A stretch of 64,000 nucleotides of DNA, taken from positions 1-64,000 of IMG/VR virus record IMGVR_UViG_3300044701_000569; one strand, 5' to 3'. The translations under genes were made by a program, and so were the position numbers. Numbering within the stretch: position 1 is the stretch's first letter; each line of letters starts with the position of its first letter. Shown here one piece after another: positions 11,614-23,669 of the stretch. Below the pieces are notes generated by a model. That model ran no database searches. It was not told the origin of the DNA and saw only the letters and a list, made by a program, of their open reading frames with translations.

Positions 11614-11718
11614 GCGGCGAGACCTCAGCTAGAACATGAAGTCTTTCAGCTGCGGCGAATGGTTGACATTTGGGTGCTGTCGTGTATAATAGAGACTTAG
11701 TTAGACAATTGAGGAGCC

Positions 11719-11880
11719 ATGATGCCTAAATTTTATTACACACAGACTGTGACATATACCTTACAGGTTGACGCAGACACAGCAGAAGCAGCAGACGAGA
11801 TTGCTGGAATGACCGATGTAAACTCTGCGGGAGTTAATGCCACCTACGAGGGCTGGGAAGAAGACGGTTACGCAGAATAA
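11719..11880 (+). CDS. Small acidic early protein (53 aa, not in ORF track)
   Basis: GAGGAG SD, own promoter; MMPKFYYTQTVTYTLQVDADTAEAADE...GYAE. Confidence 0.7.
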   Translation: MMPKFYYTQTVTYTLQVDADTAEAADEIAGMTDVNSAGVNATYEGWEEDGYAE

Positions 11881-11943
11881 TTTGGTTGACATTTGGGTGC
11901 TGTCGTGTATAATACTAGTATGTTCAACGGAGAGGGCACTAAA

Positions 11944-12186
11944 ATGGACTATGACATCGAGTTTATTAATACTACCGACTCAACTGTAGACTATAGCGAG
12001 CGAGCTATAGCAGAGTTCGAGAGGGGCATGGGGGATCGTATTGAGGTGTATACAGAGCAGTTCGAAAGCGACTGCGGGTTAGAACTGTGCGACGCAGACG
12101 ACATCGGCGGGCTCATTGTATACAGTGCAGAGGGAGCTCTGCGAGCAGTATACGACTATGAGAACTTCTGCGGGTGGCTCGTTTAA
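11944..12186 (+). CDS. Acidic early hypothetical protein
   Basis: Own promoter, GAGGGCA leader. Confidence 0.75.
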   Translation: MDYDIEFINTTDSTVDYSERAIAEFERGMGDRIEVYTEQFESDCGLELCDADDIGGLIVYSAEGALRAVYDYENFCGWLV

Positions 12187-12287
12187 ACGGGTGCAGAGGG
12201 GTGTGGCATAATAGCCACACTCTTTTTGGTTGACACGGTGCCAGAATCGTGTATAATAAGAACATAGGGCAACAGAAAGAGGGTGTT

Positions 12288-12545
12288 ATGGCAAAGACTT
12301 ATCGTTTCGTAGGGGTAAGCAACCTTAACGGTCGCTGGGCTGTTCGCTATGCCAACGAGCGGACTCGTGCGCGGGTTCTGCAGAAGAACGGGCATACGGA
12401 CGTGAAGCTGTGGGATTTGAAGGAAGCTCTGCGAGCAGAAGACCTCGTGGACGAGCTGCTCAACAAGGTTGGGCGTGGTGAGATTCTGGGCTCTGCTCGT
12501 GAAGCTGTCCTGGACGAAGCTCGCAGAATCGGCTTTGCGGTCTAA
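12288..12545 (+). CDS. Early hypothetical protein, paralog of 13475-13765
   Basis: Shared G.S.LNG....R(Y/F)AN....VL..NGHT.(V/I)KL pattern. Confidence 0.75.
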   Translation: MAKTYRFVGVSNLNGRWAVRYANERTRARVLQKNGHTDVKLWDLKEALRAEDLVDELLNKVGRGEILGSAREAVLDEARRIGFAV

Positions 12546-12616
12546 AAAAGAGGTTGACATTTGGGATCTTGGTGCTATACTAAGAGCATAGGGCAAACGA
12601 ACTGAGAGGGCAAACG

Positions 12617-13342
12617 ATGTTCAAACTGTTATCAACAGCGAATCCAAAAATCCAAAAAGGTACCAAGGAAGGCTATCTCAGCTTCATCCTGCACCTTGCT
12701 CCTGCTGATTTGAGCGGGCGTGAAGTCTGCGCCAAGCGGACCGCGGGTTGCACGGCAGCATGTCTCAACACCGCAGGGCGTGGTGGCATGTTCCGCAAGG
12801 GCGAGAACACCAACGTTATTCAAAAGGCACGTATTCGCAAGACCAAGTACTTCTTTGAGAATCGTGAAGCTTTCATGAGCGATCTTGTAGAAGACATCAT
12901 GCGAGCTGTGAACTATGCACGCCGCAAGGGCTTGACTCCCGTGTTTCGTTTGAATGGTACTAGTGACCTTGCTTGGGAGAAGTACCCAGTTCCCAACATG
13001 GGCAAGAACATCTTTGACACGTTCAGCACTCTTCAGTTCTACGACTACACCAAGATCCTGGGCCGTAAGACGAAGGATATTGACAATTACCACTTGACAT
13101 TCTCAGCCGCGGACGGTAACGACGCAGATGTTGAGCGGGCTGTGGCTCAGGGCATGAATGTCGCTGTGGTGTTTGATCGTCTGCCCGAGAATTATATGGG
13201 CAAGACTGTATTCAACGCAGACGATACGGATCTGCGCTTTTTGGATCCTAAGGGCGTGGTGCTTGGACTCAAAGCCAAGGGCCGTGCTAAGAAGGACACT
13301 TCGGGCTTCGTGCGCCGAGTGATTCCCCTGAGTGTTGCATAA
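12617..13342 (+). CDS. GP88-like phage protein (Cys-rich, CxxxxxxCxxxC)
   Basis: LHLAPA, CAKRTAGCTAACLNTAGRG, RLNGTSD, FYDYTK, NYHLTFS, DLRFLD, GLKAKG. Confidence 0.7.
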   Translation: MFKLLSTANPKIQKGTKEGYLSFILHLAPADLSGREVCAKRTAGCTAACLNTAGRGGMFRKGENTNVIQKARIRKTKYFFENREAFMSDLVEDIMRAVNYARRKGLTPVFRLNGTSDLAWEKYPVPNMGKNIFDTFSTLQFYDYTKILGRKTKDIDNYHLTFSAADGNDADVERAVAQGMNVAVVFDRLPENYMGKTVFNADDTDLRFLDPKGVVLGLKAKGRAKKDTSGFVRRVIPLSVA

Positions 13343-13474
13343 GTGCCACACTTTGGGGGTGGGCAATGGTGCCCAAAATATATGGTTGACACAATCCAAA
13401 AACCATGTATAATTTGAATATGAGCTGCGGGAACAGGTTCCAAAGCCATAAACTATGCACAAGGAGCATAAGAA

Positions 13475-13765
13475 ATGTCTAAGACGTTTACAATCGCTGG
13501 TACTTCCAGCCTCAATGGTAAGGTGAAGTTTCGTTTCGCTAACGGCACGATCAAGCATCGTGAGCAGGTGTTGACCCGCAACGGTCACACCGGGATCAAG
13601 CTCTATGAGCTGCCCTCTGCTATGGACAAGGACGCTGCTCGCTCCTTTGTCGAGAGCCAGGCTATCATGGCTCCCACTGTAACGGCTGAGGCTGTAGTGG
13701 CTGCAAAGCCCGCTCGAGCTCCAAAGGTCACAGTGCCTGCGGACGCAGAAGACGCTCTCATGTAA
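13475..13765 (+). CDS. Early hypothetical protein, paralog of 12288-12545
   Basis: AAGGAG SD; shared motifs. Confidence 0.75.
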   Translation: MSKTFTIAGTSSLNGKVKFRFANGTIKHREQVLTRNGHTGIKLYELPSAMDKDAARSFVESQAIMAPTVTAEAVVAAKPARAPKVTVPADAEDALM

Positions 13766-13885
13766 AGAGCAGTGGGGTGTGGCAGCAATGCCACACTCTT
13801 TTATAATGGCATCTTTTGGTTGACAATCTGCCCAAAGGTGCTATTATATAAGAGTGTTCAACAAACCATTGAGAGGGCAATCCAT

Positions 13886-14362
13886 ATGGAAACCGTTACA
13901 CTGCGGGGCGAAGACTTTCGTACAATCCACAACACGCTCTGCGAGCTGCGCGGCCTTGTAGAACGCATGACCCATTCGATCGTTAAGATCGATGACGTGC
14001 AGGACATCATCACCAAGTTCGAGTACGGGCTGAAGGACGCCTACGATCAGGACAGTTCAGCCTTTGATCGCAAGATGGACCACTACAGTGCTGTCAAAGA
14101 AGCAGAAAGCTTTCGCACAGTATGGAGCATCTTCACAGTGGAAGACCTGTACGAAGAGCATCCCTACAAGGACGCAGACACCATTGTCTACGAGAACCAC
14201 TGGGGCACCAGTCCCATCCGTGTAAGCTTCAAGGGCCGTCGTTGGGTAGATCTGTATGCTGCTGCGAACGCTGCGATCTGCACTTCGGGCGATGCTCATC
14301 ACATCTTTATCGAGCAGTTTACCCCCTTTGGGCGCGATCTAGTGCTGCAAACGGGCAGCTAA
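13886..14362 (+). CDS. Early hypothetical protein
   Basis: Promoter plus GAGGGCA leader; C-terminal GDAHHIFIEQF. Confidence 0.75.
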   Translation: METVTLRGEDFRTIHNTLCELRGLVERMTHSIVKIDDVQDIITKFEYGLKDAYDQDSSAFDRKMDHYSAVKEAESFRTVWSIFTVEDLYEEHPYKDADTIVYENHWGTSPIRVSFKGRRWVDLYAAANAAICTSGDAHHIFIEQFTPFGRDLVLQTGS

Positions 14363-14454
14363 GTCGTTGATCTAGAACAGGAATCTTTTTGGTTGACAAA
14401 TGGATTCCTGATGCTATAATAAGAACATAGGGTAAACAGAAAGAGGGTAATCAA

Positions 14455-14697
14455 ATGTCAAAAGTAGAACTTCGCAGCTTCGAAATCACTCCTGCAGAGC
14501 GTCGCCTCGCTGAGATCGGGCGCGGCATGATGGATGCTGCTGTGACCTGCAAGGACGATGCAGAGAGCAATCATCTTGCAGAGTGCGGTCACAAGCTCTG
14601 CGCTTTCAATGCGCCATATGGCACCACAATCAAGGACTTCACCGCTGAAGACAATGCGCTGATCCGTAAGTTCCTGGAGGGTGGTTATGCTTCTTAA
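14455..14697 (+). CDS. Early hypothetical protein
   Basis: Promoter plus AGGGTA leader. Confidence 0.75.
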   Translation: MSKVELRSFEITPAERRLAEIGRGMMDAAVTCKDDAESNHLAECGHKLCAFNAPYGTTIKDFTAEDNALIRKFLEGGYAS

Positions 14698-14899
14698 GTA
14701 TTGTGACTTCATCGCAGATCGTGTGCGAAAAGGACTCGTGAACTCGATGAACGACAGTCTAGAGCCTGTGCGTCTCAAGGACGTGGGCTCTGTAAAATGG
14801 GATTTGGGTCCGCAGGGTGAGTTTCGCTCAACCGCTAAGAGTCTTTTGGTTGAGGACGCCTACGGATCCAAATATAAGATCACGATTGAAGAAATTTAA
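14687..14899 (+). CDS. Early hypothetical protein
   Basis: GGAGG SD; overlaps the upstream stop. Confidence 0.6.
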   Translation: MLLKYCDFIADRVRKGLVNSMNDSLEPVRLKDVGSVKWDLGPQGEFRSTAKSLLVEDAYGSKYKITIEEI

Positions 14900-14998
14900 T
14901 CTTAGGGGTTGACAACCCCTAACTGTGGCCTTATAATAAGACATACTGAGGGAATAGGTATTCCCGAAGGTACTTCTACAATAAAAGGAAAAGGCATA

Positions 14999-15280
14999 AT
15001 GAAGCGATTTAATCCAGAAACCAAGACCTTCAAGGTCTTCAATGCACTCTACAACGGTGACAAGCTCACAGCGGCTCAGGCTGCAAAGCGTTTTGGCGTT
15101 GGCAATCTTGCTGCTGAAGCAAGCCGCATCCGCCAGTCAGGCTATGCTGTCTATGCTAACCAGCGTACCGCAGGCAACGGTGTAACCGTTACTGAGTATG
15201 AGATGGGTCAGCCCAGCCGCGAGATCGTTGCTCTCGGCTACAAGGCCAAGGCAGCAGGTCTTACCCTAGACACCATCTAA
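14999..15280 (+). CDS. Winged helix-turn-helix DNA-binding protein (putative)
   Basis: LTAAQAAKRFGVGNLAAEASRIRQSGYAVY followed by beta-hairpin-like YEMG. Confidence 0.65.
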   Translation: MKRFNPETKTFKVFNALYNGDKLTAAQAAKRFGVGNLAAEASRIRQSGYAVYANQRTAGNGVTVTEYEMGQPSREIVALGYKAKAAGLTLDTI

Positions 15281-15397
15281 GGTGCTCAAGAGTGTGGCAG
15301 AAATGCCACACTCTTATATAATAGCATCATTTATGGTTGACAAGCGCCTAGATGATGCTATTATATAAGAGTGTTCAACAAAGACAGAGGGCAAACA

Positions 15398-15688
15398 ATG
15401 TCAAATCGTGTTACAAGGGCAGTAGAACAGATCTACCAAATGGACGCCAACGAACTGAATCAAGTCGTTGAAGCAATCAAACTCAAACGCACCAGCCTAG
15501 CCCGTCAGGCTACTCGCTCCGTGATCATCGGCGATACTGTGAGCTTCGAAGCTCGCGGACGCATGGTTGTGGGCAAGGTCACCAAGGTGAACATCAAGAC
15601 GCTCACAGTTCGTGAAGACCGCAATGGTTCAGTCACCAACTGGAAGGTGTCCGCTACACTCGTCAACAAAGTAACCGTAGGAGCCTAA
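15398..15688 (+). CDS. Early hypothetical protein (SH3-like C-terminus)
   Basis: IGDTVSF...GKVTKVN.KT..V...WKV. Confidence 0.7.
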   Translation: MSNRVTRAVEQIYQMDANELNQVVEAIKLKRTSLARQATRSVIIGDTVSFEARGRMVVGKVTKVNIKTLTVREDRNGSVTNWKVSATLVNKVTVGA

Positions 15689-15689
15689 T

Positions 15690-16256
15690 ATGCCTAATTG
15701 GTGCAATAATTCCGTTACCATCACTCACACTGACACTGCCAAGATGCAGGCCCTTGTGGCCGCTGTCAACGAAGGCAAGTTCTGCGATCATGTGATTCCT
15801 ACTCCGCAGGATCTCACTGACACTGTGTCAGGATCCGTGCCTGAGGGGCCTGAGCGTGAAGCTCATGAAGCTCAGATGAAGCGTAACCTAGAGCTCTACG
15901 GAGCCAAGGACTGGTATGACTATCAGGTTTCCAACTGGGGGACCAAGTGGGATGTTCAGCCCTACGACACTGTTGAGCTGGAAGACGGCACTGTCTCCTT
16001 TGGCTTTGACAGTGCTTGGAGCCCGCCCATTGGAGTCTACACCATGCTGGTTGAACAAGGGTTCACTGTCAAGGCTTTCTACTACGAGCCAGGCATGTGC
16101 TTTGCTGGTGTATGGGAAGACGGCATTGATGAGTTCTACGAGCTGGACGGTATGTCTTCTGATGAAGTAGCCAACACGATCGATCGCGAGTTGGACGAGG
16201 TCATGGGCATCTCAGAGAGCATGGCTGAATACGAAGAAGAAAACATCGAAGAATAA
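15690..16256 (+). CDS. DUF1281/YubB ferredoxin-like domain protein
   Basis: MPNWCNN, WYDY...NWGTKWD, FDSAWSPP, YYEPG..FAG. Confidence 0.75.
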   Translation: MPNWCNNSVTITHTDTAKMQALVAAVNEGKFCDHVIPTPQDLTDTVSGSVPEGPEREAHEAQMKRNLELYGAKDWYDYQVSNWGTKWDVQPYDTVELEDGTVSFGFDSAWSPPIGVYTMLVEQGFTVKAFYYEPGMCFAGVWEDGIDEFYELDGMSSDEVANTIDRELDEVMGISESMAEYEEENIEE

Positions 16257-16314
16257 TGGTTGACAGCACCCTACGGGGTGCTATAATGAGCATATGAACA
16301 GCAAAGAGGGTATC

Positions 16315-16527
16315 ATGTCAAAAGAGATCTTGTTTGAAGACCTTGCAGAACAGCTGGCGCTGCTCAGCGACGAGGATCGTGCAGAGTTTGCTCAGTTCCT
16401 TGTAGAGAACTATCTACACGCCGCAGCGGGCTTGGCTACAGACATTGGACACGCTGAGATGGATCTAGAGTATTCTGCTCACGACACTTTTGAAGCGTAT
16501 CAAAGACGCGAGAACATATTCACATAA
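16315..16527 (+). CDS. Early acidic hypothetical protein
   Basis: Promoter plus GAGGGTA leader. Confidence 0.7.
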   Translation: MSKEILFEDLAEQLALLSDEDRAEFAQFLVENYLHAAAGLATDIGHAEMDLEYSAHDTFEAYQRRENIFT

Positions 16528-16544
16528 AGAGTAAATAACATCAC

Positions 16545-16621
16545 GCTCCTATAGCTCAATTGGTTAGAGCACCGGACTCATAATCCGTAGGTTCACAGTT
16601 CAAGTCTGTGTGGGAGCACCA
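16545..16621 (+). tRNA. tRNA with CAT anticodon, probably Ile2 (lysidine, reads AUA); elongator Met not excluded
   Basis: Acceptor GCTCCTA/TGGGAGC, anticodon loop CTCATAA, GTTCAA T-loop, encoded CCA; C4-G69 and C5-G68 pairs as in TilS substrates. Confidence 0.85.
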
Positions 16622-16624
16622 AAT

Positions 16625-16707
16625 GTCCGCGTGGTGGAATAGGTAGACACAAGAGACTTAAAATCTCTCGCTTAGGCGTGCCGGTTCGAGTCCGGCCGCG
16701 GATACCA
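16625..16707 (+). tRNA. tRNA-Leu(TAA)
   Basis: Acceptor GTCCGCG/CGCGGAT, AGAGA-CTTAAAA-TCTCT, long variable arm, CCA. Confidence 0.92.
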
Positions 16708-16785
16708 AGGCTAAGTATATGAACAAGACCAGTCAAGGTTATAAGAAGTATATACAAAAGATGAACTATCAACAGTTTATCAAAT

Positions 16786-16863
16786 CTGCCCGTAGCTCAG
16801 CAGGATTAGAGCAACAGCCTTCTAAGCTGTGGGTCGGGGGTTCGAATCCCTCCGGGCAGGCCA
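16786..16863 (+). tRNA. tRNA-Arg(TCT)
   Basis: Acceptor CTGCCCG/CGGGCAG, ACAGC-CTTCTAA-GCTGT, GGTTCGAATCC, CCA. Confidence 0.92.
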
Positions 16864-16890
16864 TTACCCCCAAAGCCAAACAGTAATACC

Positions 16891-17070
16891 ATGCCTCGCA
16901 TACCAACTAGTCGGATTCCTGACGACTGGGACTCCTACGACGATGATGAGCTAGATCTTAACCTAGAAGAGGAACGGGAGCGCAGAGAGCGCAAACGAAC
17001 CAAGCAAGACGCTGATGAGGACCAACAGCGCAGGGATTCGTGGCGCAAAAGCAACACCAAACGCAGCTAA
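16891..17070 (+). CDS. Small charged hypothetical protein (59 aa, not in ORF track)
   Basis: MPRIPTSRIPDDWDSYDDDE...NTKRS. Confidence 0.45.
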   Translation: MPRIPTSRIPDDWDSYDDDELDLNLEEERERRERKRTKQDADEDQQRRDSWRKSNTKRS

Positions 17071-17161
17071 GTCATTGATTCTAATAGAGAATCTTTTTGG
17101 TTGACAAGATCCCGTGTTCGTGTATAATAAGAACATAGGGCAAACAAACAAAGAGGGCAAT

Positions 17162-17440
17162 ATGATAGAACGCAAAGACTACACCGTAGAGGTTTACAAG
17201 GCAGACAAGCGCACCAAAGCAGGTGAGCGCCTTGTGCTCAAGCAGGATCACACAGACATCGATCTGCAGACACTGCGTCATCTTTATCTTACCACTTGGT
17301 TCAAGAACGACGGCTACCGCCATGAGTTCCACGAGACTTATGTAACCCGCACCAACATGATGGGTGGTAAGGAGTATCAGGAACGCTATGACACTCCTCG
17401 CTACTGCTCACCCAGCTCTGAAGCCTACTGGAGCATGTGA
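17162..17440 (+). CDS. Early hypothetical protein
   Basis: Promoter plus double AGGGCA leader; C-terminal TPRYCSPSSEAYWSM. Confidence 0.8.
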   Translation: MIERKDYTVEVYKADKRTKAGERLVLKQDHTDIDLQTLRHLYLTTWFKNDGYRHEFHETYVTRTNMMGGKEYQERYDTPRYCSPSSEAYWSM

Positions 17441-17441
17441 T

Positions 17442-17669
17442 TTGAGGACTGATGACATCCTACAATGGACAGGGGCGGTGTTCATCATCGCTGGACACGC
17501 CCTCAACGCCGTGGGCCCGGGTGCCCACCCGTGGAATATCCTGGCTTTCTTCCTGGGTACTATAGCATTCTTTATCTGGACTGTCCGTGTTGCAAATAAG
17601 CCGCAGATGGCTGTGAATGTGGTAGCCCTAGGGCTAGGAGCACTGGGTCTAGTAAAATCAATGACTTAA
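17442..17669 (+). CDS. Small membrane protein (about 3 TM)
   Basis: Hydrophobic; start uncertain (TTG). Confidence 0.55.
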   Translation: MRTDDILQWTGAVFIIAGHALNAVGPGAHPWNILAFFLGTIAFFIWTVRVANKPQMAVNVVALGLGALGLVKSMT

Positions 17670-17755
17670 CAGACCAAAAAAGTTTCAAAAAAGTGGTTGA
17701 CATTTGGGCGCACCCGTGTATAATAAGAACATAGGGCAAACAGAAAGGGCATACA

Positions 17756-17974
17756 ATGATCAAGCAAGTCGCAAAGGTAGCTGTAATTGGTACGCTGATG
17801 TTCAGCGGTACGCTGTTCGCAATGGACTACGCTTTCAGCATTCCAATTGTCAACAAGAGCTTCAGCACCAACCAATGCGTGTCTGTGGATAACTATCCGG
17901 GCTTAGTGTTTGGCAAGGCTGTATACTCCTGCGAGAACATGCCTGAGAAGTATGAGCTGAACTGGGTAAAATAA
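17756..17974 (+). CDS. Early membrane-anchored hypothetical protein
   Basis: Promoter plus leader; N-terminal hydrophobic helix. Confidence 0.7.
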   Translation: MIKQVAKVAVIGTLMFSGTLFAMDYAFSIPIVNKSFSTNQCVSVDNYPGLVFGKAVYSCENMPEKYELNWVK

Positions 17975-18042
17975 TGGTTGACAGCGCCTGCAGAGGTGCT
18001 ATACTAAGAACATAGGGCAAACAAACAGAGAGGGCAAAGCAA

Positions 18043-18510
18043 ATGGCAACACGAAGCACAATCGCAATGGAATTCGCAGACGGTACTGTCCAGCAGATCT
18101 ACTGCCACTGGGACGGCTACCTTTCCAATAACGGGCAGATCCTGCTCCAACACTATTCAGATCCTTTCAAAGTTCGTGAGTTGATCGACGGCGGCGCTGT
18201 TAGTTCGCTACGCCCTGAGATTGGCACCAAGCATGCGTTCAGCCAGTTTGAGGCTAAGGGCCAACCCTACGACGCAAAGCTCTACGAAGACATGACTACG
18301 TTTTACGCTCGCGATCGTGGCGAGGACTTGGTCAAAAACAAGTTCAAGGACTTTGCGGACTACCGCAAGAACGCACAGAGCGAGGAATACAATTATATCC
18401 TGCGCCGTGACGGCAATTGGTACGTGGAGTTCTACGGCGAGTTTGACGGCTTGCTGACTAAGGCTATTATGGACGAACAGGATCGCGAAGCACAAGAGGA
18501 GATAGCGTAA
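18043..18510 (+). CDS. Early phage protein with MATRS...IYCHWDGY motif
   Basis: Promoter plus double AGGGCA leader. Confidence 0.8.
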   Translation: MATRSTIAMEFADGTVQQIYCHWDGYLSNNGQILLQHYSDPFKVRELIDGGAVSSLRPEIGTKHAFSQFEAKGQPYDAKLYEDMTTFYARDRGEDLVKNKFKDFADYRKNAQSEEYNYILRRDGNWYVEFYGEFDGLLTKAIMDEQDREAQEEIA

Positions 18511-18683
18511 TGGCTATCTGTCCAGAGTGCATGGAAGAGAAGAGCATCCTTGCTAGTCGCTGTCCTCACTGCACTCAGGACATTGGTTATGGTAGACAGA
18601 TCCTTGCGATGTGTGTATACTACGGAGCAATCGTGTTGACTATGACATTTTTGGTTGTGCTGCTCAAGGCATGTAGTGGTTGA
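18510..18683 (+). CDS. Zinc-ribbon plus TM small protein (57 aa, not in ORF track)
   Basis: CPEC...CPHC then hydrophobic tail; stop TGA lies inside the next TTGACA. Confidence 0.65.
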   Translation: MAICPECMEEKSILASRCPHCTQDIGYGRQILAMCVYYGAIVLTMTFLVVLLKACSG

Positions 18684-18738
18684 CAGCAGAGCTAGATCGT
18701 GTATAATAGTGAAACATTCAACAGAAAGGGCAAAGGGC

Positions 18739-19761
18739 ATGAGTAAGACAATCCGTTTTATCGAAGGTACGTATAAGATTCGCGGCAACGACACTTCAGT
18801 TGCTGGATTGGTATTTCCTCTAGTAGAGGAATTCAAGGTAGGTACGGGCGGTGGCTACGTCACAGTGGATGGTAGTTCTGTGGCAGGCTTCCCGGATCGC
18901 AACATTAAGATCCGTTGCGAAGGTGCCGAGTCATACGAAACAGTGGACTCGAAGGTAGCCACCGCCCAGGCCAAGAGCCGTGTTGAGACTGATGAGCAGA
19001 TCATTGAACGACTGCGCGATCGTTTCAGCATGCTGGAGGAGATGACCAAAGCCTGTAAGAAGGGCGATGTGCGAGCTATGATCGTATCAGGTCCTCCGGG
19101 CGTTGGTAAGAGTCACGGTGTTGAGAAGGTGTTGGGCAAGCACGACCTGCTCGCTGACATCGCTAACGACTCAAAGTTCAAGAAGTACGAAGTGGTCAAG
19201 GGTGCTATGAGCGCCATTGGACTCTACTGCAAGCTGTTTCAGTATGCGGACAAGGATAACGTTATCGTGTTCGATGACTGCGATAGTGTGCTGTTGGACG
19301 ACCTCAGCTTGAACATTCTCAAGGCTGCTCTAGACTCTAAGAAGTCGCGTCGCATTCACTGGAACACCGACAGCTATAAACTGCGCAACGAAGGTGTGCC
19401 GGACAGCTTCGAGTTCAAGGGCTCAGCTATCTTTATCACCAACATCAAGTTCGATAACGTTAAGAGCAAGAAGCTCCGTGATCACCTTGAAGCTCTTGAG
19501 AGCCGTTGCCACTACATTGACCTGACCATTGATACAGAGCGTGAGAAGATGCTCCGCATCAAGCAGATCACTAAAGACGGCATGCTCTCTGAGTACGGCC
19601 TTAGTGAGGAAGTCCAAGACGAAATTGTGGACTTCATCGATCTTAACAAGAAGCGACTACGGGAACTGTCATTGCGTACAGTACTAAAGGTTGCCGATCT
19701 AGCCAAAGCATTCCCCTCTAAGTGGGAAGCTATGGCGGAGAATACTGTGATGAAGCGGTAA
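18739..19761 (+). CDS. AAA+ family ATPase
   Basis: Walker A GPPGVGKS, Walker B VIVFDDCD, sensor IFITN, ALESR arginine finger; leader AAAGGGCAAAGGGCATG. Confidence 0.85.
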   Translation: MSKTIRFIEGTYKIRGNDTSVAGLVFPLVEEFKVGTGGGYVTVDGSSVAGFPDRNIKIRCEGAESYETVDSKVATAQAKSRVETDEQIIERLRDRFSMLEEMTKACKKGDVRAMIVSGPPGVGKSHGVEKVLGKHDLLADIANDSKFKKYEVVKGAMSAIGLYCKLFQYADKDNVIVFDDCDSVLLDDLSLNILKAALDSKKSRRIHWNTDSYKLRNEGVPDSFEFKGSAIFITNIKFDNVKSKKLRDHLEALESRCHYIDLTIDTEREKMLRIKQITKDGMLSEYGLSEEVQDEIVDFIDLNKKRLRELSLRTVLKVADLAKAFPSKWEAMAENTVMKR

Positions 19762-19906
19762 GCCCTCCCGCTCACAGTACGGGCTCAGCAAGCCCTAGGA
19801 CATGCCCTCGTCCACCCGCTGAGCCCTAAAGAGCAGACAATCGTGTGCCCTCACGCTCTGCTCTTTGCGCCCGGACAGTGTGCCCTCGCTGTCCGGGTAT
19901 TTTTTT
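19743..19906 (+). ncRNA. Candidate four-hairpin structured RNA with GCCCU(C) loops, ending in an intrinsic terminator
   Basis: Stems 19743-19779, 19781-19826, 19828-19866, 19869-19898, each with a GCCCU-containing loop; T-run at 19900-19906. Confidence 0.7.
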
Positions 19907-19914
19907 CTCTGCAA

Positions 19915-19950
19915 AATCAATGACTTACAGCATAGGCTAAGTCATTGAAA
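19915..19950. promoter_or_regulatory. Inverted pair of IHF-like sites
   Basis: AATCAATGACTTA 19915-19927 and TAAGTCATTGAAA 19938-19950. Confidence 0.6.
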
Positions 19951-20040
19951 TCATTGAGGATTTTTTCTAAAAAAAGTGGTTGACATTTGGGCGCACCCGT
20001 GTATAATAAGAACATAGGGCAAACAAGAGGAGCAGCGTAC

Positions 20041-20232
20041 ATGGGCTACAGGATCATCAACGTTACACCAGAGTTCCGCGCACAATGGGAACCCAGAGTA
20101 GGTTTGGAAGGTCCGTTCTTCTACGAAGGCAACCGTGTGCTCTACTATGATGCCCGCGAAGGCAAGTACCTTAATCCCCAGACAGATATGTACCTCACCT
20201 ACGAAGAGTATGATGAGATCGCAAAGCAATAA
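20041..20232 (+). CDS. Early hypothetical protein
   Basis: GLEGPF...VLYYD.REGKY motif; own promoter. Confidence 0.75.
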   Translation: MGYRIINVTPEFRAQWEPRVGLEGPFFYEGNRVLYYDAREGKYLNPQTDMYLTYEEYDEIAKQ

Positions 20233-20301
20233 AAGTGGTTGACACGGATCCAAAACCGTGTATAATAAGAACATAGGGCAAACAAACAAGAGGGCAAACA
20301 A

Positions 20302-20637
20302 ATGGCAATGATCGTAATCCGCACCCAGTACATGGAAAACTATGGCGCCCACGATTGGGACGGCACTGGTGAGTGCCCGCAGTACTGGAAGTTCAAGGGC
20401 GGCTCGGAGTACAAGATCACCAACATCGACATCAACGGTGATCTGCAGGCTGCGGTGCGAGCTGCGGCTGTGGAACGCGACAACGACTACTGCCGCGAAT
20501 ACATCCTGGATTGGAGTGTGGAGGGGGACGACTACCTCAGCCAGTTCGAGCGTCAACAGCTGGAGTACGAGGGCAAGATTGACTGCCTTGAGCCCACTAT
20601 GGGCTATCGTGAGCTGCTGGAGACTCAGCCCGCATAA
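20302..20637 (+). CDS. Early hypothetical protein
   Basis: TQYMENYGAHDWDG.GECPQYWKFKGG; own promoter. Confidence 0.8.
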   Translation: MAMIVIRTQYMENYGAHDWDGTGECPQYWKFKGGSEYKITNIDINGDLQAAVRAAAVERDNDYCREYILDWSVEGDDYLSQFERQQLEYEGKIDCLEPTMGYRELLETQPA

Positions 20638-20709
20638 AAAGAATTGGTTGACAGGAACCCAAAATCCTGTATAATAAGAACATAGGGCAACAGAACAGAG
20701 GAGCACAGT

Positions 20710-21105
20710 ATGGATTGGGACAACATGATCAACACGCAAGAGGGATTGGCTCGCATGGTGGGCAAGACCTTTGTGAGCGTGAGCGGTGGCCGAGGCGACG
20801 GCGAGATGGAGTTCCGTACTGCTGACGGTGAGATCTTCCTGTTCAGCCACTACCAGGACTGCTGCGAATCCGTTAGTATCGAGGACGTCTGCGGTGACAT
20901 CCGGGACTTGGTGGGCGAGCCCATCCTCCTAGCTGAAGAAGTGTCGGGAGAAGCTCCTGCATCCGATGAGGATCACTGGGGCTCACAGACCTGGACCTTC
21001 TACAAGTTCGCTACCCGCAAGGGCTATGTGGACGTTCGCTGGCTGGGTGAATCCAACGGATATTACTCAGAGTCAGTGGATATGTACTATCAGGGTGTGG
21101 CATAA
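20710..21105 (+). CDS. Early hypothetical protein
   Basis: HYQDCCESV, WTFYKFATRKGYV.VRW.G.SNGYYSE. Confidence 0.8.
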   Translation: MDWDNMINTQEGLARMVGKTFVSVSGGRGDGEMEFRTADGEIFLFSHYQDCCESVSIEDVCGDIRDLVGEPILLAEEVSGEAPASDEDHWGSQTWTFYKFATRKGYVDVRWLGESNGYYSESVDMYYQGVA

Positions 21106-21183
21106 AAGCCACACCAAAAGTGGTTGACAGATTGGCACTAGGTGCTATACTAAGAACATAGGGCAAACAGAAAGGGCAATTAA

Positions 21184-21435
21184 ATGGACAAAGAACAGTT
21201 TGAACGTGATCCCCGGGACTATGCGCTGGACATGGTCAATGAGGGAATGGTCGATCCTATGCTGCTGCTCCAAGCAGCTCTGAATTGGATGAGCCACGAT
21301 GAGGTCCGCGAGATGTTGGACGCTAACGAACTCAGCCCGCGCTTCTCAGAGGATGAAGACGATGAGGATGAGGACGAAGAGTGGACTCCGGACAATGCAG
21401 ACTTCAACGATCCCGGCTCACGCCACCACTACTAA
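21184..21435 (+). CDS. Highly acidic early protein
   Basis: Own promoter; D/E tract. Confidence 0.75.
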   Translation: MDKEQFERDPRDYALDMVNEGMVDPMLLLQAALNWMSHDEVREMLDANELSPRFSEDEDDEDEDEEWTPDNADFNDPGSRHHY

Positions 21436-21441
21436 GGAGCG

Positions 21442-21669
21442 ATGATGATTAGAGAGCATATTCAAATGGAAACACGCCACGGCAGTCCTTATGATCGTGG
21501 TTCAGCAGACTCATACTACCGCAGGAAGCGCAGTCCTCACTACTATGTGGGCGACACTGGTACTTCAGAGCGTGTCACCCTCAAGGACATGACACCCGAT
21601 GAGGTCGAAGCCTATCACGCAGGCTACGATGACAACGAAGAAGCTGACAACCACAAGGAGTGGTTGTGA
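21442..21669 (+). CDS. Early hypothetical protein
   Basis: AAGGAG SD; RHGSPYDRGSADSYY motif. Confidence 0.75.
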   Translation: MMIREHIQMETRHGSPYDRGSADSYYRRKRSPHYYVGDTGTSERVTLKDMTPDEVEAYHAGYDDNEEADNHKEWL

Positions 21670-21773
21670 TGACTAGATTCGCAGAGTTCATCCTAGCTAC
21701 CTTTGCGGGTAGGATCGTACTGTTTGGAATGATTGTGGCCAGTCTTTGGACCTATCGTCTAATTTCTGGTTGA
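21669..21773 (+). CDS. Single-TM micro-protein (34 aa, not in ORF track)
   Basis: MTRFAEFILATFAGRIVLFGMIVASLWTYRLISG; stop inside the next TTGACA. Confidence 0.5.
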   Translation: MTRFAEFILATFAGRIVLFGMIVASLWTYRLISG

Positions 21774-21830
21774 CAAGAGTTCAAAAGGTGCTATACTAAG
21801 AACATAGGGCAAACACAAAGGGCAAACACC

Positions 21831-22157
21831 ATGCAAGACATTTTCAGCTTCATCGAAGACACCAATGACCAACTGCGCCGCTTGGTGCATGAAATGGAAT
21901 ACGTCCCTGCGGACAGCCTGGGCTTGGATCGTCGTGCCGCTTACCGCCTGTGGGTCAACGACGACTGCATCATCGTTGACAAGGGCAACGACCGCACCCT
22001 GCAGTACTACGGTGGGTTCGAGTATGTGGACAAGGAGTACCGCATTGAGATGGGTGACTATGTGATCTACCTCTCAGATGACGATCGTGTACAGGGACAC
22101 ATTGACACCCACTATCAGCGCGATGAAGAGGGTGTTTACACGGACGAAGACGCTTAA
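21831..22157 (+). CDS. Early acidic hypothetical protein
   Basis: Own promoter plus leader. Confidence 0.75.
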   Translation: MQDIFSFIEDTNDQLRRLVHEMEYVPADSLGLDRRAAYRLWVNDDCIIVDKGNDRTLQYYGGFEYVDKEYRIEMGDYVIYLSDDDRVQGHIDTHYQRDEEGVYTDEDA

Positions 22158-22169
22158 CCAAGGAACGAT

Positions 22170-22433
22170 ATGAATACAGTGATGATGACAATGGTGCGCC
22201 CCACGGTGCTGTTTGATGTGCTGAATCCACAGCACCGTGAGTGGGCCTATCAGTTCTTAGAACAGAAGAGCTGGCGTGACTGCCCAGTGATGTTCGCTCT
22301 CCCCCAAAGCGAGCCCTCGGTGTACACCATGATCACACGTGAGCTGAGCCACTATTACCTAAAGCAGGAGTTCCAACAGAAGCCCTGCCCTGTTGTAAAA
22401 ATACAACAGAAGTTTAAGGTAAAAAATGGTTGA
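22170..22433 (+). CDS. Hypothetical protein
   Basis: AAGGA SD; stop inside the next TTGACA. Confidence 0.65.
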   Translation: MNTVMMTMVRPTVLFDVLNPQHREWAYQFLEQKSWRDCPVMFALPQSEPSVYTMITRELSHYYLKQEFQQKPCPVVKIQQKFKVKNG

Positions 22434-22504
22434 CAGGGTTCCAAAATCCTGTATAATTAAGATGTAGGGCAAAAAAACTGTAACACGTAACACTAGGGGG
22501 CTAT

Positions 22505-22888
22505 ATGACAAAAGTAAATTATGACCGTTTCGCCAGCTTCGATCTCAACGAGTGCTGTGACTACTTTGACTCAGAGAAGCAGAGCAACTGGAAGAAGATC
22601 GGCAAGTTCATCGTAGCCGATGGACAGGAGTACGTAGAGGTCATGGAGCAAGAGTTTGACTTTGAGGACACTACAGACTCAGAGTACTCAGCATTTGAAG
22701 CGGGCGTCAAGTATGCGCTCACCAAGATGAACATTGCCCTGGAGGCCGCGGGCATAGACGTACAGGTCTGCGAAGTGGACCTCGTAGAGAGCATGGGCTT
22801 TATGATGGTGCGTTGCGATGACGAGCCCGAGGACTTTGTAAAGCGAGCTCTCAAGAAGCCCGTGCCCCAGGTAGAGAGCTGGGTCTAA
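22505..22888 (+). CDS. Early acidic hypothetical protein
   Basis: Own promoter. Confidence 0.75.
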   Translation: MTKVNYDRFASFDLNECCDYFDSEKQSNWKKIGKFIVADGQEYVEVMEQEFDFEDTTDSEYSAFEAGVKYALTKMNIALEAAGIDVQVCEVDLVESMGFMMVRCDDEPEDFVKRALKKPVPQVESWV

Positions 22889-22988
22889 GAGCCCGGGGTG
22901 TGGCATAAAAGCCACACCAAAAGTGGTTGACAGGAACCCAAAATCCTGTATAATAAGATACATAGGGCAAACACAAAGGGCAAAGCAA

Positions 22989-23261
22989 ATGAACATTTCC
23001 ACTCTTGAGCAGTACGTAGATCAGAAGAACCGCTGGGGCGCAATCTTTGGCTCCAAACCGTTGAGTCTGCTGAACAGCCAGGACCGCCAGGCTATCGCAG
23101 ACTCACTGGACTCAGACCTAAGCCCAGAGAATGTGAGCTGTGACGGAGAGATCCAAGGACGAGCTCTGATCCAGAAGCGCAACTATCTGATCCGTGCCGC
23201 ACGTGAACTCCACAGCATTGACCCTTCAGTTCGTATGTACGAAGCTGAGGGTTGGTTCTAA
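22989..23261 (+). CDS. Early hypothetical protein
   Basis: LSPENVSCDGE motif; own promoter. Confidence 0.75.
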   Translation: MNISTLEQYVDQKNRWGAIFGSKPLSLLNSQDRQAIADSLDSDLSPENVSCDGEIQGRALIQKRNYLIRAARELHSIDPSVRMYEAEGWF

Positions 23262-23339
23262 CTAGGGGTTGACACGAGTCCAAACTCGTGTATAATTAGA
23301 ACTGTAGGGCAAACAAACACACACGAAAGGGCAAACACT

Positions 23340-23669
23340 ATGATTACAGCACAGCAGATTGAGCAGGGCATCACGCTCGCACAGCAGGCTTCACAGCAGT
23401 TCTTCCAGCAGAAGCTGGGTGGACAGGACCAGTACGCCTGTGGCTTTGCTTGGGTAGATGTGTACGTGGATCGCACTAACTCTAAGCAGGCCAAGGAACT
23501 CTTAGCCGCAGGCTTCCGCAAGGACTACAAGCCCAAGTGCCTCTCAATGTGGAACCCAGGTGGCTTGGGTGTGCAGAACGTGGACACCAAAGAAGCGGGT
23601 GCGGACGCTATGGCACAGTACCTCAGAGCACTGGGCTTGAATGCCTACGCAGGCTCACGCTTAGATTAA
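23340..23669 (+). CDS. Early hypothetical protein
   Basis: ACGFAWV...Q....KEAGA.A.A..L...G..AY..SRLD. Confidence 0.8.
   Translation: MITAQQIEQGITLAQQASQQFFQQKLGGQDQYACGFAWVDVYVDRTNSKQAKELLAAGFRKDYKPKCLSMWNPGGLGVQNVDTKEAGADAMAQYLRALGLNAYAGSRLD

Follow-up and report, generated by a model that had tools for sequence, protein, structure and literature searches.

A hairpin array in the 3'UTR of a jumbo phage ATPase gene, a candidate multi-loop antisense RNA directed at a shared early-leader box

Three hairpins of S. aureus RNAIII, the terminator among them, have C-rich loops that bind the ribosome-binding sites of target mRNAs; the active hairpin H14 is at the same time the terminator, some targets need two contacts, and ribosome loading is blocked (PMC8383071). 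RNAIII, like the RsaE/RoxS class, thus turns multiple C-rich hairpin loops towards the G-rich ribosome-binding sites of many mRNAs. In phages P1 and P7, the structured c4 RNA pairs through exposed segments around the ribosome-binding site of an early or immunity operon, as does the CI RNA of P4; P1 c4 represses ant (PMC8198154). It acts on a single operon, its own source transcript, in temperate phages. With regard to the c4 loop and heteroimmunity, RNA and target reportedly differ in step between P1 and P7 (Citron & Schuster 1990). Virulent phages are also known to accumulate non-coding RNAs derived from 3'UTRs (PMC10914365). Among large virulent phages, T4 is the only one in which the switch-off of early genes has been described in detail: its early proteins RegA and RegB shut off early translation, RegB cutting within GGAG of early mRNAs.

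In this study, we analysed a hairpin array present in a 64-kb stretch of phage DNA (64,000 nucleotides, hereafter the window). By analogy, its closest relatives among described systems would be RNAIII and P1 c4 RNA. A preliminary description, made from the sequence alone, had stated that no comparable phage system was known to its author, and this needs correcting, since RNAIII-type C-rich loops and c4 are close mechanistic precedents. The source phage is uncultured, jumbo-sized (357 kb) and looks virulent. The features of the locus are the following.

11663-23340, + strand: predicted target regulon, with 22 near-consensus sigma70 promoters
18680-18741, + strand: promoter and leader of the ATPase operon (early sigma70-type promoter at 18680-18707)
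18727-18732 and 18734-18739, + strand: AGGGCA boxes in the ATPase leader, the second overlapping the ATG at 18739-18741
18739-19761, + strand: AAA-type ATPase gene (T4 NrdC.10-like, PHROG 1250, function unknown)
19743-19779, + strand: hairpin H1, whose 5' arm is coding (last ATPase codons) and whose loop contains the stop codon
19759-19767, + strand: H1 loop, UAAGCCCUC
19781-19826, + strand: hairpin H2, outer stem GGGCUCAGC/GCUGAGCCC
19790-19797, + strand: H2 internal loop, AAGCCCUA, complement of UAGGGC
19802-19809, + strand: H2 apical loop, AUGCCCUC
19827-19867, + strand: hairpin H3, stem AAAGAGCAGA/UCUGCUCUUU, apical part CGUG-UGCCCU-CACG, loop at 19846-19851
19869-19898, with tail to 19906, + strand: hairpin H4, 12-bp G+C-rich stem, loop UGCCCU at 19881-19886, then A+U7
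19980-20043, + strand: next early promoter and leader, AAGAACAUAGGGCAAACAAGAGGAGCAGCGUACAUG

As an early promoter starts at 19980, just past the array, the array closes one transcription unit. RNAfold of 19743-19920 gave exactly four hairpins in succession, followed by the U-run at 19900-19906, with a minimum free energy of -78.5 kcal/mol against -49.7 +/- 3.9 in 200 dinucleotide shuffles (z = -7.4), none of which folded as stably as the array. The preliminary description had proposed four stem-loops here, with GCCCU in every loop. Both claims held: every element described is present, and the five exposed loops carry GCCCU, as five (U/A)GCCCU(C/A) copies in predicted single-stranded positions. 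GCCCT occurs six times inside 19762-19886, versus 37 times across the whole 64 kb. Five of the six array copies are predicted to be unpaired, with P(unpaired) of 0.89-1.00 (0.89 and 0.97 for the H2 internal and apical loops), and the sixth, at 19823, lies within the H2 stem. No GCCCT in a hairpin loop was found elsewhere in the window. When a covariance model of the UGCCCU hexaloop hairpin was run on the 64 kb with filters off, H3 and H4 were the sole matches, H4 scoring 33.5 bits. H3 also has the motif CACGCUCUGC, which was found again in relatives. The four-hairpin structure and the exposure of its loops are thus shown, at the level of predicted folding.

H4 was the top-ranked terminator-like site in 16 kb. 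It has the properties of an intrinsic terminator on the + strand, so that an RNA 3' end is placed there and the + strand is the transcribed one; H1 to H3 have no T-runs and are therefore not terminators. Early-region terminators other than H4 have GCAA-type tetraloops. Arrays of relatives close with a hairpin and a T-run on the same strand, and a promoter scan found no minus-strand promoter near the array. A CsrB-like protein sponge made from the minus strand, which had been put forward as an alternative, is rejected on terminator polarity. Only short, spurious ORFs overlap the array, and there is no conserved reading frame across the arrays of relatives, which are ~100-300 nt long with 2-6 hairpins. 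No Rfam 15 family reached its gathering threshold on 19743-19906 in a 10-kb scan, the best hit of a 261-nt scan with lax filters being atoC (22 bits, threshold 50). The C4 family, if in the release, did not reach its gathering score on the array either, and megablast against 50,697 phage records gave no match.

Early promoters were defined as + strand sites in 11663-23296 with at least 11/12 matches to TTGACA-16/17-TATAAT. Among the 22 corresponding leaders, 19 carry AGGG(C/T), exactly as had been claimed, and 17 carry AGGGC; the leader quoted as an example, at 17129-17164, was also correct. A typical leader reads ..AAAG(A)GGGCAA-N2-7-AUG, with the box in Shine-Dalgarno position, and 14 leaders additionally have (A/G)UAGGGY, ~3-8 nt from the inferred 5' end. 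These leaders are short, unstructured and CA-rich. Read from the sequence, UGCCCUC and GAGGGCA, as well as GCCCUA and UAGGGC, are exact reverse complements, so that the complementarity claimed initially holds in full. The GAGGGCA box consists of the Shine-Dalgarno core (GAGG/AGGG) and of a 3' extension, GCA, which does not pair with 16S rRNA and which makes the site "private" to the phage. Because the ATPase leader has two AGGGCA boxes, the array-bearing gene is itself a predicted target. The idea of two pairing sites per mRNA failed as a conserved feature: the upstream box 1 (UAGGGC, ~+3 to +8) is present in this phage but is mostly private to it, and two-site pairing is therefore not conserved.

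About 50 non-redundant relatives (viral and metagenome contigs) have 2-6 hairpins directly 3' of the same ATPase gene, with stems unrelated in sequence but covarying, and with conserved loops. Past the ATPase stop of 43 non-redundant viral-contig relatives, GCCCU is in the apical loop of 95/144 predicted hairpins; no such loop was found at 19 loci of other clades. For 35 distinct UGCCCU-hexaloop hairpins, the loop was invariant (35/35) and the stems varied, with a stem covariation of 0.756, versus 0.20 in shuffles and at most 0.17 in slid controls. In H1, the last ATPase codons pair with a non-coding arm, and covariation was seen at synonymous sites in 38 relatives, one synonymous-site pair taking five forms (UA 16, AU 11, CG 4, GC 3, GU 3). 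This H1 result was obtained by folding each sequence separately with the ungapped coding arm as anchor, an approach biased towards pairing; MAFFT followed by RNAalifold predicted no pairs on H1, the alignment being broken by the variable loops. On a further 568 kb of related loci, 25/26 matches of the hexaloop model were directly past the ATPase stop. The exact 16-mer hairpin top GGATGTGCCCTCGTCC was found at 25 IMG/VR loci, all 3' of the ATPase, and also has 10 chance matches in unrelated G+C-rich coding sequences. The array is neither a product of chance nor private to the source phage, and the conservation and stem covariation that had been set as a check are shown. In the nearest phage, PA5oct, which is cultured and has RNA-seq data (ATPase identity 45%), no array was found 3' of the ATPase, another gene beginning after 43 nt. 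On the leader side, 165/206 unique leaders of clade A carry AGGGC, and GAGGGCA lies inside the last 22 nt of 98 of them. In most cases, 3-8 nt separate the end of the box from the ATG, whereas the spacing between the -10 element and the box varies from 7 to 47 nt; the position of the box thus follows the start codon rather than the promoter.

A second check concerned whether loops change together with the leader motif, and it also came out in favour, with the limits given below. Relatives whose leaders have AGGAGCGAA in place of GAGGGCA have 3'UTR hairpins with AUUCGCUCC in place of GCCCUC: to GGAGCG(AA) leaders correspond (AU)UCGCUCC segments in the equivalent hairpins. In this clade B, GGAGC is present in 63/84 leaders and GGAGCG in 52/84, and the hairpins read CCG-AUUCGCUCC-CGG within variable outer stems. 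At metagenome loci L256, L258 and L263, 2-3 hairpins of this type lie immediately 3' of the ATPase. The sub-clade formed by L235 and L240 has AUCCUCGCUCCG loops alongside GCGAGGA and GGAGCGA leaders. Among non-redundant loci with AGGGC-type leaders, 53/53 have a GCCCT array and 0/53 a CGCTCC array. Automatic rules ("motif in a loop" and "first downstream ORF") misclassified clade-B loci, due to an inner stem of just 3-4 bp and to more than one intervening ORF, and direct listings were used instead.

The co-change of loop and box between clades is shown as an observation, and it is the decisive result for the base-pairing reading, with the reservation that independent events are few and that one locus departs from the rule. 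Only ~2-3 evolutionary events underlie the motif switch; on the ATPase tree, the A/B switch amounts to only ~2 changes, and an independent-contrast test on this tree had 1-2 usable contrasts, hence no power. The counter-example is L042, which retained GCCCUC/GCCCCUC loops although 7/8 of its leaders use GGAGA. The clade of L044, L216, L218 and L226 has CU-rich loops and AGAGAG/GAGGA leaders, and these leaders match their own array no better than other arrays. Relatives belonging to clade C have a leader box of their own, GGCACA; within +/-6 kb, they showed no anti-box array. A clade C candidate hairpin with loop GGUGCCCGUG was discarded, as the sequence around it codes for a DNA-ligase-like protein (KLDGVR motif).

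Pairing was then expressed as RNAup-like interaction energies (duplex plus opening costs). Array RNA of clade A is predicted to bind clade-A leaders at -8.8 kcal/mol and clade-B leaders at -3.1, and clade-B RNA binds clade-B leaders at -9.0 kcal/mol and clade-A leaders at -5.2, so that predicted values are about -9 kcal/mol for cognate pairs and -3 to -5 for non-cognate ones. Comparison with shuffled clade-A leaders (-4.1 kcal/mol) also favours the proposed interaction, and late-gene start regions gave -2.9 kcal/mol (Mann-Whitney p = 6e-8 versus early leaders). The best predicted partner is the ATPase's own leader, at -12.9 kcal/mol. Two of the 20 tested leaders lack both AGGG(C/T) and a GAGGAGC-type box, and gave -1.7 and -3.3 kcal/mol. 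The leader at 11663, without an AGGG(C/T) box, reached -7.4 kcal/mol through a 14-nt duplex over its GAGGAGCC, at a cost of 5.5 kcal/mol of H3 stem opening. Thus, of what is expected from a 3'UTR-derived sRNA, the array ends in an intrinsic terminator whose U-run lies on the transcribed strand, and it has a conserved single-stranded seed as well as a seed-target complementarity above controls with co-change, the latter under the caveats of few events and of L042.

On balance, and with moderate confidence, we favour the view that the array is a multi-loop antisense RNA which, from a 3'UTR, base-pairs with a Shine-Dalgarno box that is extended and private to the phage, most likely preventing translation of the early regulon. 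The segment 19743-19906 (164 nt) would be the 3' end of an early mRNA, perhaps released as a stable RNA ending at H4, and each loop copy would form a 6-7 bp G+C-rich helix with GAGGGCA or UAGGGC in early leaders. Since the ribosome-binding site would be covered by this pairing, a block of 30S binding is the most likely outcome. All boxed early mRNAs, that of the ATPase included, would be hit together, and ordinary AGGAG sites would be spared. Being made from an early promoter and heavily structured, the RNA would build up during infection, and would in this way provide an internal timer, or a negative feedback, to shut early translation. The loop-to-leader pairing and co-regulation proposed initially are supported; there are no expression or regulatory data, and accumulation of the RNA, pairing in vivo, and repression rather than stabilisation remain inferred.

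Several points weigh against this proposal. A pairing of 6-7 bp is short, and full use of a 6-nt loop requires that its closing pairs be strained or opened. With a single RNA gene set against more than 20 promoters of equal strength, repression depends on the RNA being much the more stable. As the box doubles as the Shine-Dalgarno site, translation alone explains part of its conservation. It is also possible that promoter-leader cassettes were homogenised by duplication. An origin of the loops as inverted remnants of leader cassettes was rejected, as similarity to the inverted leader stops at the 7-nt core.

Compared with RNAIII and RsaE, the array likewise aims five exposed GCCCU loops at the Shine-Dalgarno position, but no sequence or model homology exists (Rfam) and the resemblance is of mechanism only. 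Unlike RNAIII, it is phage-encoded and lies within the 3'UTR of a protein gene, its 6-7 nt motif reaches past the Shine-Dalgarno core and has a dedicated counterpart box in the phage's own early regulon, and both motif and box differ between phage clades. It differs from c4 by its position at a 3' end, by the ~19 separate transcription units that carry the box, and by its virulent-looking jumbo phage. The proposed role resembles that of T4 RegA and RegB, an early product acting at many early ribosome-binding sites, except that the effector would be an RNA, with specificity through base pairing. As in CsrB and RsmZ, a single motif is repeated across many hairpin loops; those, however, are GGA loops that titrate a protein, whereas the + strand loops of the array read (U/A)GCCCUC, AGGGC being on the untranscribed strand only. 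Finally, PeSL cassettes of T4-type phages reportedly associate a stem-loop and an early promoter between small early genes (Arbiol et al. 2010). The succession of a terminator hairpin and a consensus early promoter, repeated in a plastic early region, is similar here, but PeSLs are single hairpins at many sites, thought to promote recombination, whereas the array is unique in its region and its loops match leaders.

Other explanations can be considered for the same observations. A phage or host RNA-binding protein specific for the loop might read GCCCU(C), as with coat-protein operators or boxB, in which case the array would govern how the ATPase mRNA is terminated, stabilised or localised, and the leader complementarity would be incidental. 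Hairpins recognised by proteins classically combine invariant loops with variable stems, and the array keeps strict synteny with a single gene. Nevertheless, we consider this unlikely: proteins read a sequence and not its complement, whereas the loop matches, as its exact reverse complement, the 7-mer found most often in leaders; it is left without account why loop and leader both switched to another complementary pair in clade B as well as in L235/L240; and the presence of the motif in an internal loop, and in other loops whose size varies from 6 to ~19 nt, would be unusual for a structure-specific site. Pairing could also be restricted to cis or to the ATPase operon (its own leader, or the next one upon read-through), which would be autoregulation without a regulon. 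The ATPase's two-box leader, as best predicted partner (-12.9 kcal/mol), and the single array per genome region, always behind the ATPase gene, speak for it. We doubt this reading as well, given that the box is in ~80% of promoter-proximal leaders (more than 200 unique), which is hard to explain with one target, and that pairing by a free RNA is diffusion-limited and not confined to cis.

Slightly less probable again is a purely structural 3' end, i.e. a tandem terminator and exonuclease barrier in which GCCCU would merely be kept as an unusually stable or nuclease-resistant loop. H4 is a strong intrinsic terminator, and tandem 3' hairpins are known to stabilise mRNAs. Against this, terminators of the same region have GCAA-type tetraloops, the loops that hold the motif differ widely in size and include an internal one, the sister clade has a very different 9-nt loop that again matches its own leaders, and stability by itself predicts no link to leaders. 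We give slightly less credit still to a DNA-binding protein site, GAGGGCA/TGCCCTC, the leaders being operators and the array a sink or centromere-like locus. The motifs are identical in duplex DNA, so that co-variation between clades is likewise expected, and box 1, at ~+3 to +8 of promoters in this phage, is in a possible repressor position. Such a site gives, however, no reason for placing the motif at the tips of inverted repeats with covarying, non-conserved arms, nor for a T-run past the last repeat on one strand only, and the conserved leader box tracks the ATG and not the promoter.

A bolder form of the antisense reading, which we regard as unlikely, is that the loop/box pair is a co-evolving private "translation code" providing RNA-based specificity between phages. 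On this view, a resident array RNA would silence the early genes of superinfecting relatives with the same box, in the way that the c4 RNAs of P1 and P7 set heteroimmunity, and competition between co-circulating jumbo phages would drive the orthogonal pairs GCCCUC/GAGGGC, UUCGCUCC/GGAGCGAA and UCCUCGCUCC/GGAGCGAGGA. If true, virulent phages would here have their first antisense system for exclusion or timing that spans a whole regulon, and nature would supply a set of mutually orthogonal pairs, each of a riboregulator and a ribosome-binding site.

Returning to the antisense RNA proper, conservation of the system extends over a large clade of uncultured, aquatic jumbo phages, with contigs from marine and freshwater samples. 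The system would suggest, in the absence of regulatory data, that bases flanking the Shine-Dalgarno core can carry regulatory specificity independent of 16S rRNA pairing. Its at least 2-3 naturally orthogonal versions are ready compensatory-mutation controls, and potential translational repressor/ribosome-binding-site pairs. For the biology of these phages, the proposal offers an alternative to shut-off by proteins, in which one structured RNA would read a box in ~20 early transcripts.

The plus-strand RNA of 19743-19906 is predicted to fold into exactly the four consecutive hairpins claimed in the preliminary description (H1 to H4, together the array), with a minimum free energy of -78.5 kcal/mol (z = -7.4; 0 of 200 shuffled sequences were equally stable). 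The features concerned are:

18739-19761: coding sequence of an AAA-type ATPase, T4 NrdC.10-like (PHROG 1250), of unknown function
19743-19906, plus strand: hairpin array, between the ATPase stop codon and the next early promoter (19980)

The 5' arm of H1 consists of the last ATPase codons and the stop codon lies within its loop, while H4, whose 12-bp stem is G+C-rich and precedes AUUUUUUU, ranks first among intrinsic terminators in 16 kb. GCCCT is present in 6 copies within 125 nt of the array, versus 37 in 64 kb, and 5 of the array copies are predicted single-stranded (P 0.89-1.00). Elsewhere in the window, hairpin loops contain no GCCCT, and the loops of other early-region terminators are GCAA-type. 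In a scan of the window, H3 and H4 were the only matches to a UGCCCU-hairpin covariance model.

Twenty-two plus-strand promoters were found at 11.6-23.3 kb (11663-23296), using a criterion of at least 11/12 matches to TTGACA-16/17-TATAAT; 16 match at 12/12, and nearly all have a 16-bp spacer. The leaders, which are short and CA-rich, contain AGGG(C/T) in 19 of 22 cases, exactly as previously counted. The usual form is AAGAACAUAGGGCAAACA..AAAG(A)GGGCAA..AUG, in which box 1 is the upstream UAGGGC and box 2, GAGGGCA-type, occupies the Shine-Dalgarno position. If transcription begins the usual 7 nt after the -10 element, the 5' ends would lie near AUAGGGC and box 1 at about +3 to +8. Early-region genes without their own promoter and minus-strand late genes have ordinary AGGAG/GGAGG-like or weak sites. 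The canonical extension matching the 16S tail is GGAGGUGAUC; GCA after GAGG/AGGG cannot pair with this tail, so that conservation of the extension points to a different partner.

By analogy with the PeSL modules of T4-type phages, the 22 promoters and leaders look like a repeated promoter-leader cassette; many share the initial transcribed sequence AAGAACATAGGGCAAACA. Three tRNA genes (Met-CAT, Leu-TAA, Arg-TCT) are clustered on the plus strand at 16545-16863, inside the early region, where G+C is about 50% (15655-22758, locus L002) versus 41.7% across all 64 kb of the window. From about 29 kb on, the replication and structural genes on the minus strand appear A+T-richer, their composition being unmeasured. 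An extra hairpin (19922-19949, AATGACTTA-CAGCATAGGC-TAAGTCATT) lies beyond the H4 terminator and before the next promoter, and its loop includes AUAGGC, i.e. box 1 minus one G.

Relatives of the ATPase were collected from viral contigs (best 80 of 313 kept) and metagenomes (best 80 of 272 kept). The window is identical to sequence of the 357-kb IMG/VR contig 3300044701_000569, and its terminase shares 55% identity with the counterpart in Pseudomonas jumbo phage PA5oct; the phage collection searched held no closer record, and no array follows the PA5oct ATPase homologue. This homologue (MK797984 248735-249889; L082 3210-4364) is annotated 'thioredoxin', as in some other records. The window protein matches AAA-type ATPase models (under Pfam cut-offs) and NrdC.10-like proteins, so that this name is probably an annotation error.

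In clade A (relatives with AGGGC-type leaders and GCCCU loops), ATPases are about 63-82% identical to that of the window, and every relative has 2-6 hairpins after the stop codon, then a T-run. Their stems share no sequence. GCCCU occupies the apical loop of 95 of the 144 predicted hairpins from 43 non-redundant loci (108 if GCCC/CCCU is allowed), and of no hairpin in 19 loci of other clades. An invariant UGCCCU hexaloop, closed by a G-C pair and usually also a U.G, is found in 35 distinct hairpins. Stem covariation around conserved loops, a check proposed in the preliminary description, came out in favour: these 35 hairpins scored 0.756, versus 0.20 for shuffled and at most 0.17 for slid controls. 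The three closing pairs had served to pick them, and unbiased evidence comes only from the pairs beyond these: the fourth is formed in 33/35 and the fifth in 31/35, each showing 4-5 pair types. A Thr codon in H1 has its third position paired with the non-coding arm, as UA (16), AU (11), CG (4), GC (3) or GU (3).

The array is present in single copy and its position is syntenic. A 16-mer, GGATGTGCCCTCGTCC, was found in 25 IMG/VR loci, each time directly 3' of the ATPase, besides 10 chance matches in unrelated G+C-rich genes, and 25 of the 26 matches of the hairpin model over 568 kb of related loci fall at the post-ATPase position. The sole exception (L114:3809-3838, AGGTTG-TGCCCT-CGACCT, with a UGCCCU hexaloop) immediately follows a tRNA gene and precedes the ATPase of that locus by 2.2 kb.

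Among 206 unique clade-A leaders, 165 contain AGGGC, and 98 have GAGGGCA at most 22 nt from the ATG. The box stops 3-8 nt short of this codon, its distance from the -10 element being 7-47 nt. Clade-B leaders (GGAGCG-type; basal and sister lineages) read AAGGAGCGAAC..AUG, with GGAGC in 63/84 and GGAGCG in 52/84. Their ATPase transcription unit ends with a hairpin of variable outer stems and inner CCG-AUUCGCUCC-CGG, often preceded by a second, single-stranded UUCGCUCC and followed by a terminator; AUUCGCUCC is the reverse complement of GGAGCGAAU. Four loci (L076, L256, L258 and L263) carry 2-3 such hairpins directly 3' of the ATPase, sharing the architecture of the window with a different loop, and two others (L235 and L240) have loops AUCCUCGCUCCG and leaders with GCGAGGA as well as GGAGCGA. 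GCCCT arrays are present in 53/53 non-redundant loci with A-type leaders and CGCTCC arrays in 0/53; B-type loci have CGCUCC elements and lack the GCCCU-loop array. Co-change of loop and leader motif, the other proposed check, likewise came out in favour, at clade level.

The string CACGCTCTGC (19852-19861), kept in H3-type hairpins of many relatives, resembles ATCACGCTCTAA, the 3' end of an extra ORF after the clade-B ATPase (L050/L070, around the ORF stop); the array has perhaps grown from the decayed end of such an ORF. In several loci (L005, L014, L018, L021, L030 and others), AATTAGGGGTTGACA recurs just upstream of the -35, and TTAGGGG, which resembles the leader box, is conserved immediately 5' of the hexamer, possibly as an UP-like or factor-binding element.

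Predicted interaction energies of clade-A and clade-B array RNAs (RNAup-like calculation, duplex energy plus opening costs)
RNA A with A leaders: -8.8 kcal/mol
RNA A with B leaders: -3.1 kcal/mol
RNA B with B leaders: -9.0 kcal/mol
RNA B with A leaders: -5.2 kcal/mol
RNA A with shuffled A leaders: -4.1 kcal/mol
RNA A with late-gene start regions: -2.9 kcal/mol (p = 6e-8 versus early leaders)

The best scores of RNA B on A leaders came from a few window leaders with GAGGAGC. A comparison by longest exact complement to unpaired array segments gave the cognate diagonal again for A, B and E. The best predicted target of the array RNA is the leader of the ATPase operon itself (-12.9 kcal/mol).

Several observations weaken the pairing model. 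The A/B difference maps to about 2 changes on the ATPase tree, so the loop-leader association is clade-level, and an independent-contrast test has no power. The L042 lineage does not fit: its two post-ATPase hairpins keep GCCCUC/GCCCCUC loops, 7 of its 8 leaders have GGAGA-type sites, and all 8 start with a conserved 5' hairpin (CAGTGAGCGAACAGCTC). Another clade (L044/L216/L218/L226) has CU-rich loops (CCCUCUCUC, CUCCCUCCC) and AGAGAG/GAGGA leaders, which match their own array no better than other arrays. Clade C (L143, L146-L148, L157; 35-40% GC) has a third box type, GGCACA-type, with AAGGCAAC repeated, then (G)AGGCACA before the ATG, and no anti-box hairpin array within 6 kb; a candidate hairpin with loop GGUGCCCGUG was rejected, as it sits within a DNA-ligase-like gene. 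The suggested binding at two sites per mRNA is not a conserved feature, because box 1 is common only in the phage of the window and a few relatives.

Two conserved motifs, each defined independently, are exact reverse complements, and in sister lineages a new complementary pair stands in place of both; it is thus very hard, on sequence comparison and without expression data, to avoid the inference that loop and box are functionally linked. This link could in principle operate on duplex DNA, where both motifs are one site. Against this, each array copy caps a hairpin whose stem covaries, the final hairpin is a terminator on one strand only, and the position of the leader box follows the start codon, all of which argues for action as RNA. 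Alternatively, a protein might read the hairpin loops, but their complementarity to the leader box would then remain unexplained. We therefore lean, in the absence of expression data, towards an antisense RNA whose pairing partner is the extended Shine-Dalgarno box shared by the early regulon. The preliminary description is confirmed as to the observation; its interpretation, a 3'UTR-derived RNA pairing loop to leader, was supported in every computational test run and is unproven experimentally.

The array belongs to no described family: no Rfam family matched, and the literature searched contained no paper describing such an array. The mechanism resembles that of S. aureus RNAIII, in which three hairpins with C-rich loops, one being the terminator, occlude ribosome-binding sites, two contacts sometimes being needed (PMC8383071); the array differs in lying in a phage 3'UTR and in having a dedicated target box that is specific to the clade. 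It is also akin to c4 RNA of P1/P7, a phage RNA whose pairing site is the ribosome-binding site of an early/immunity operon; c4 represses ant (PMC8198154). The specificity of c4 RNA co-varies. The array, however, addresses about 20 separate transcripts. In virulent phages, 3'UTR-derived ncRNAs without known function are documented (PMC10914365).

Pairing of the array RNA with the box at early ribosome-binding sites would repress translation, the most likely outcome, though without expression data, since the ribosome-binding site would be buried in the helix and the leaders lack other structure. Synthesis of the RNA would start at an early promoter, and the leader of that promoter is its best predicted target; the circuit therefore has the look of delayed negative feedback. 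In T4, early shut-off is performed by RegA and RegB. By analogy, the same role is proposed for the array RNA, whose delayed feedback may act, as inferred without expression data, as a timer for early shut-off.
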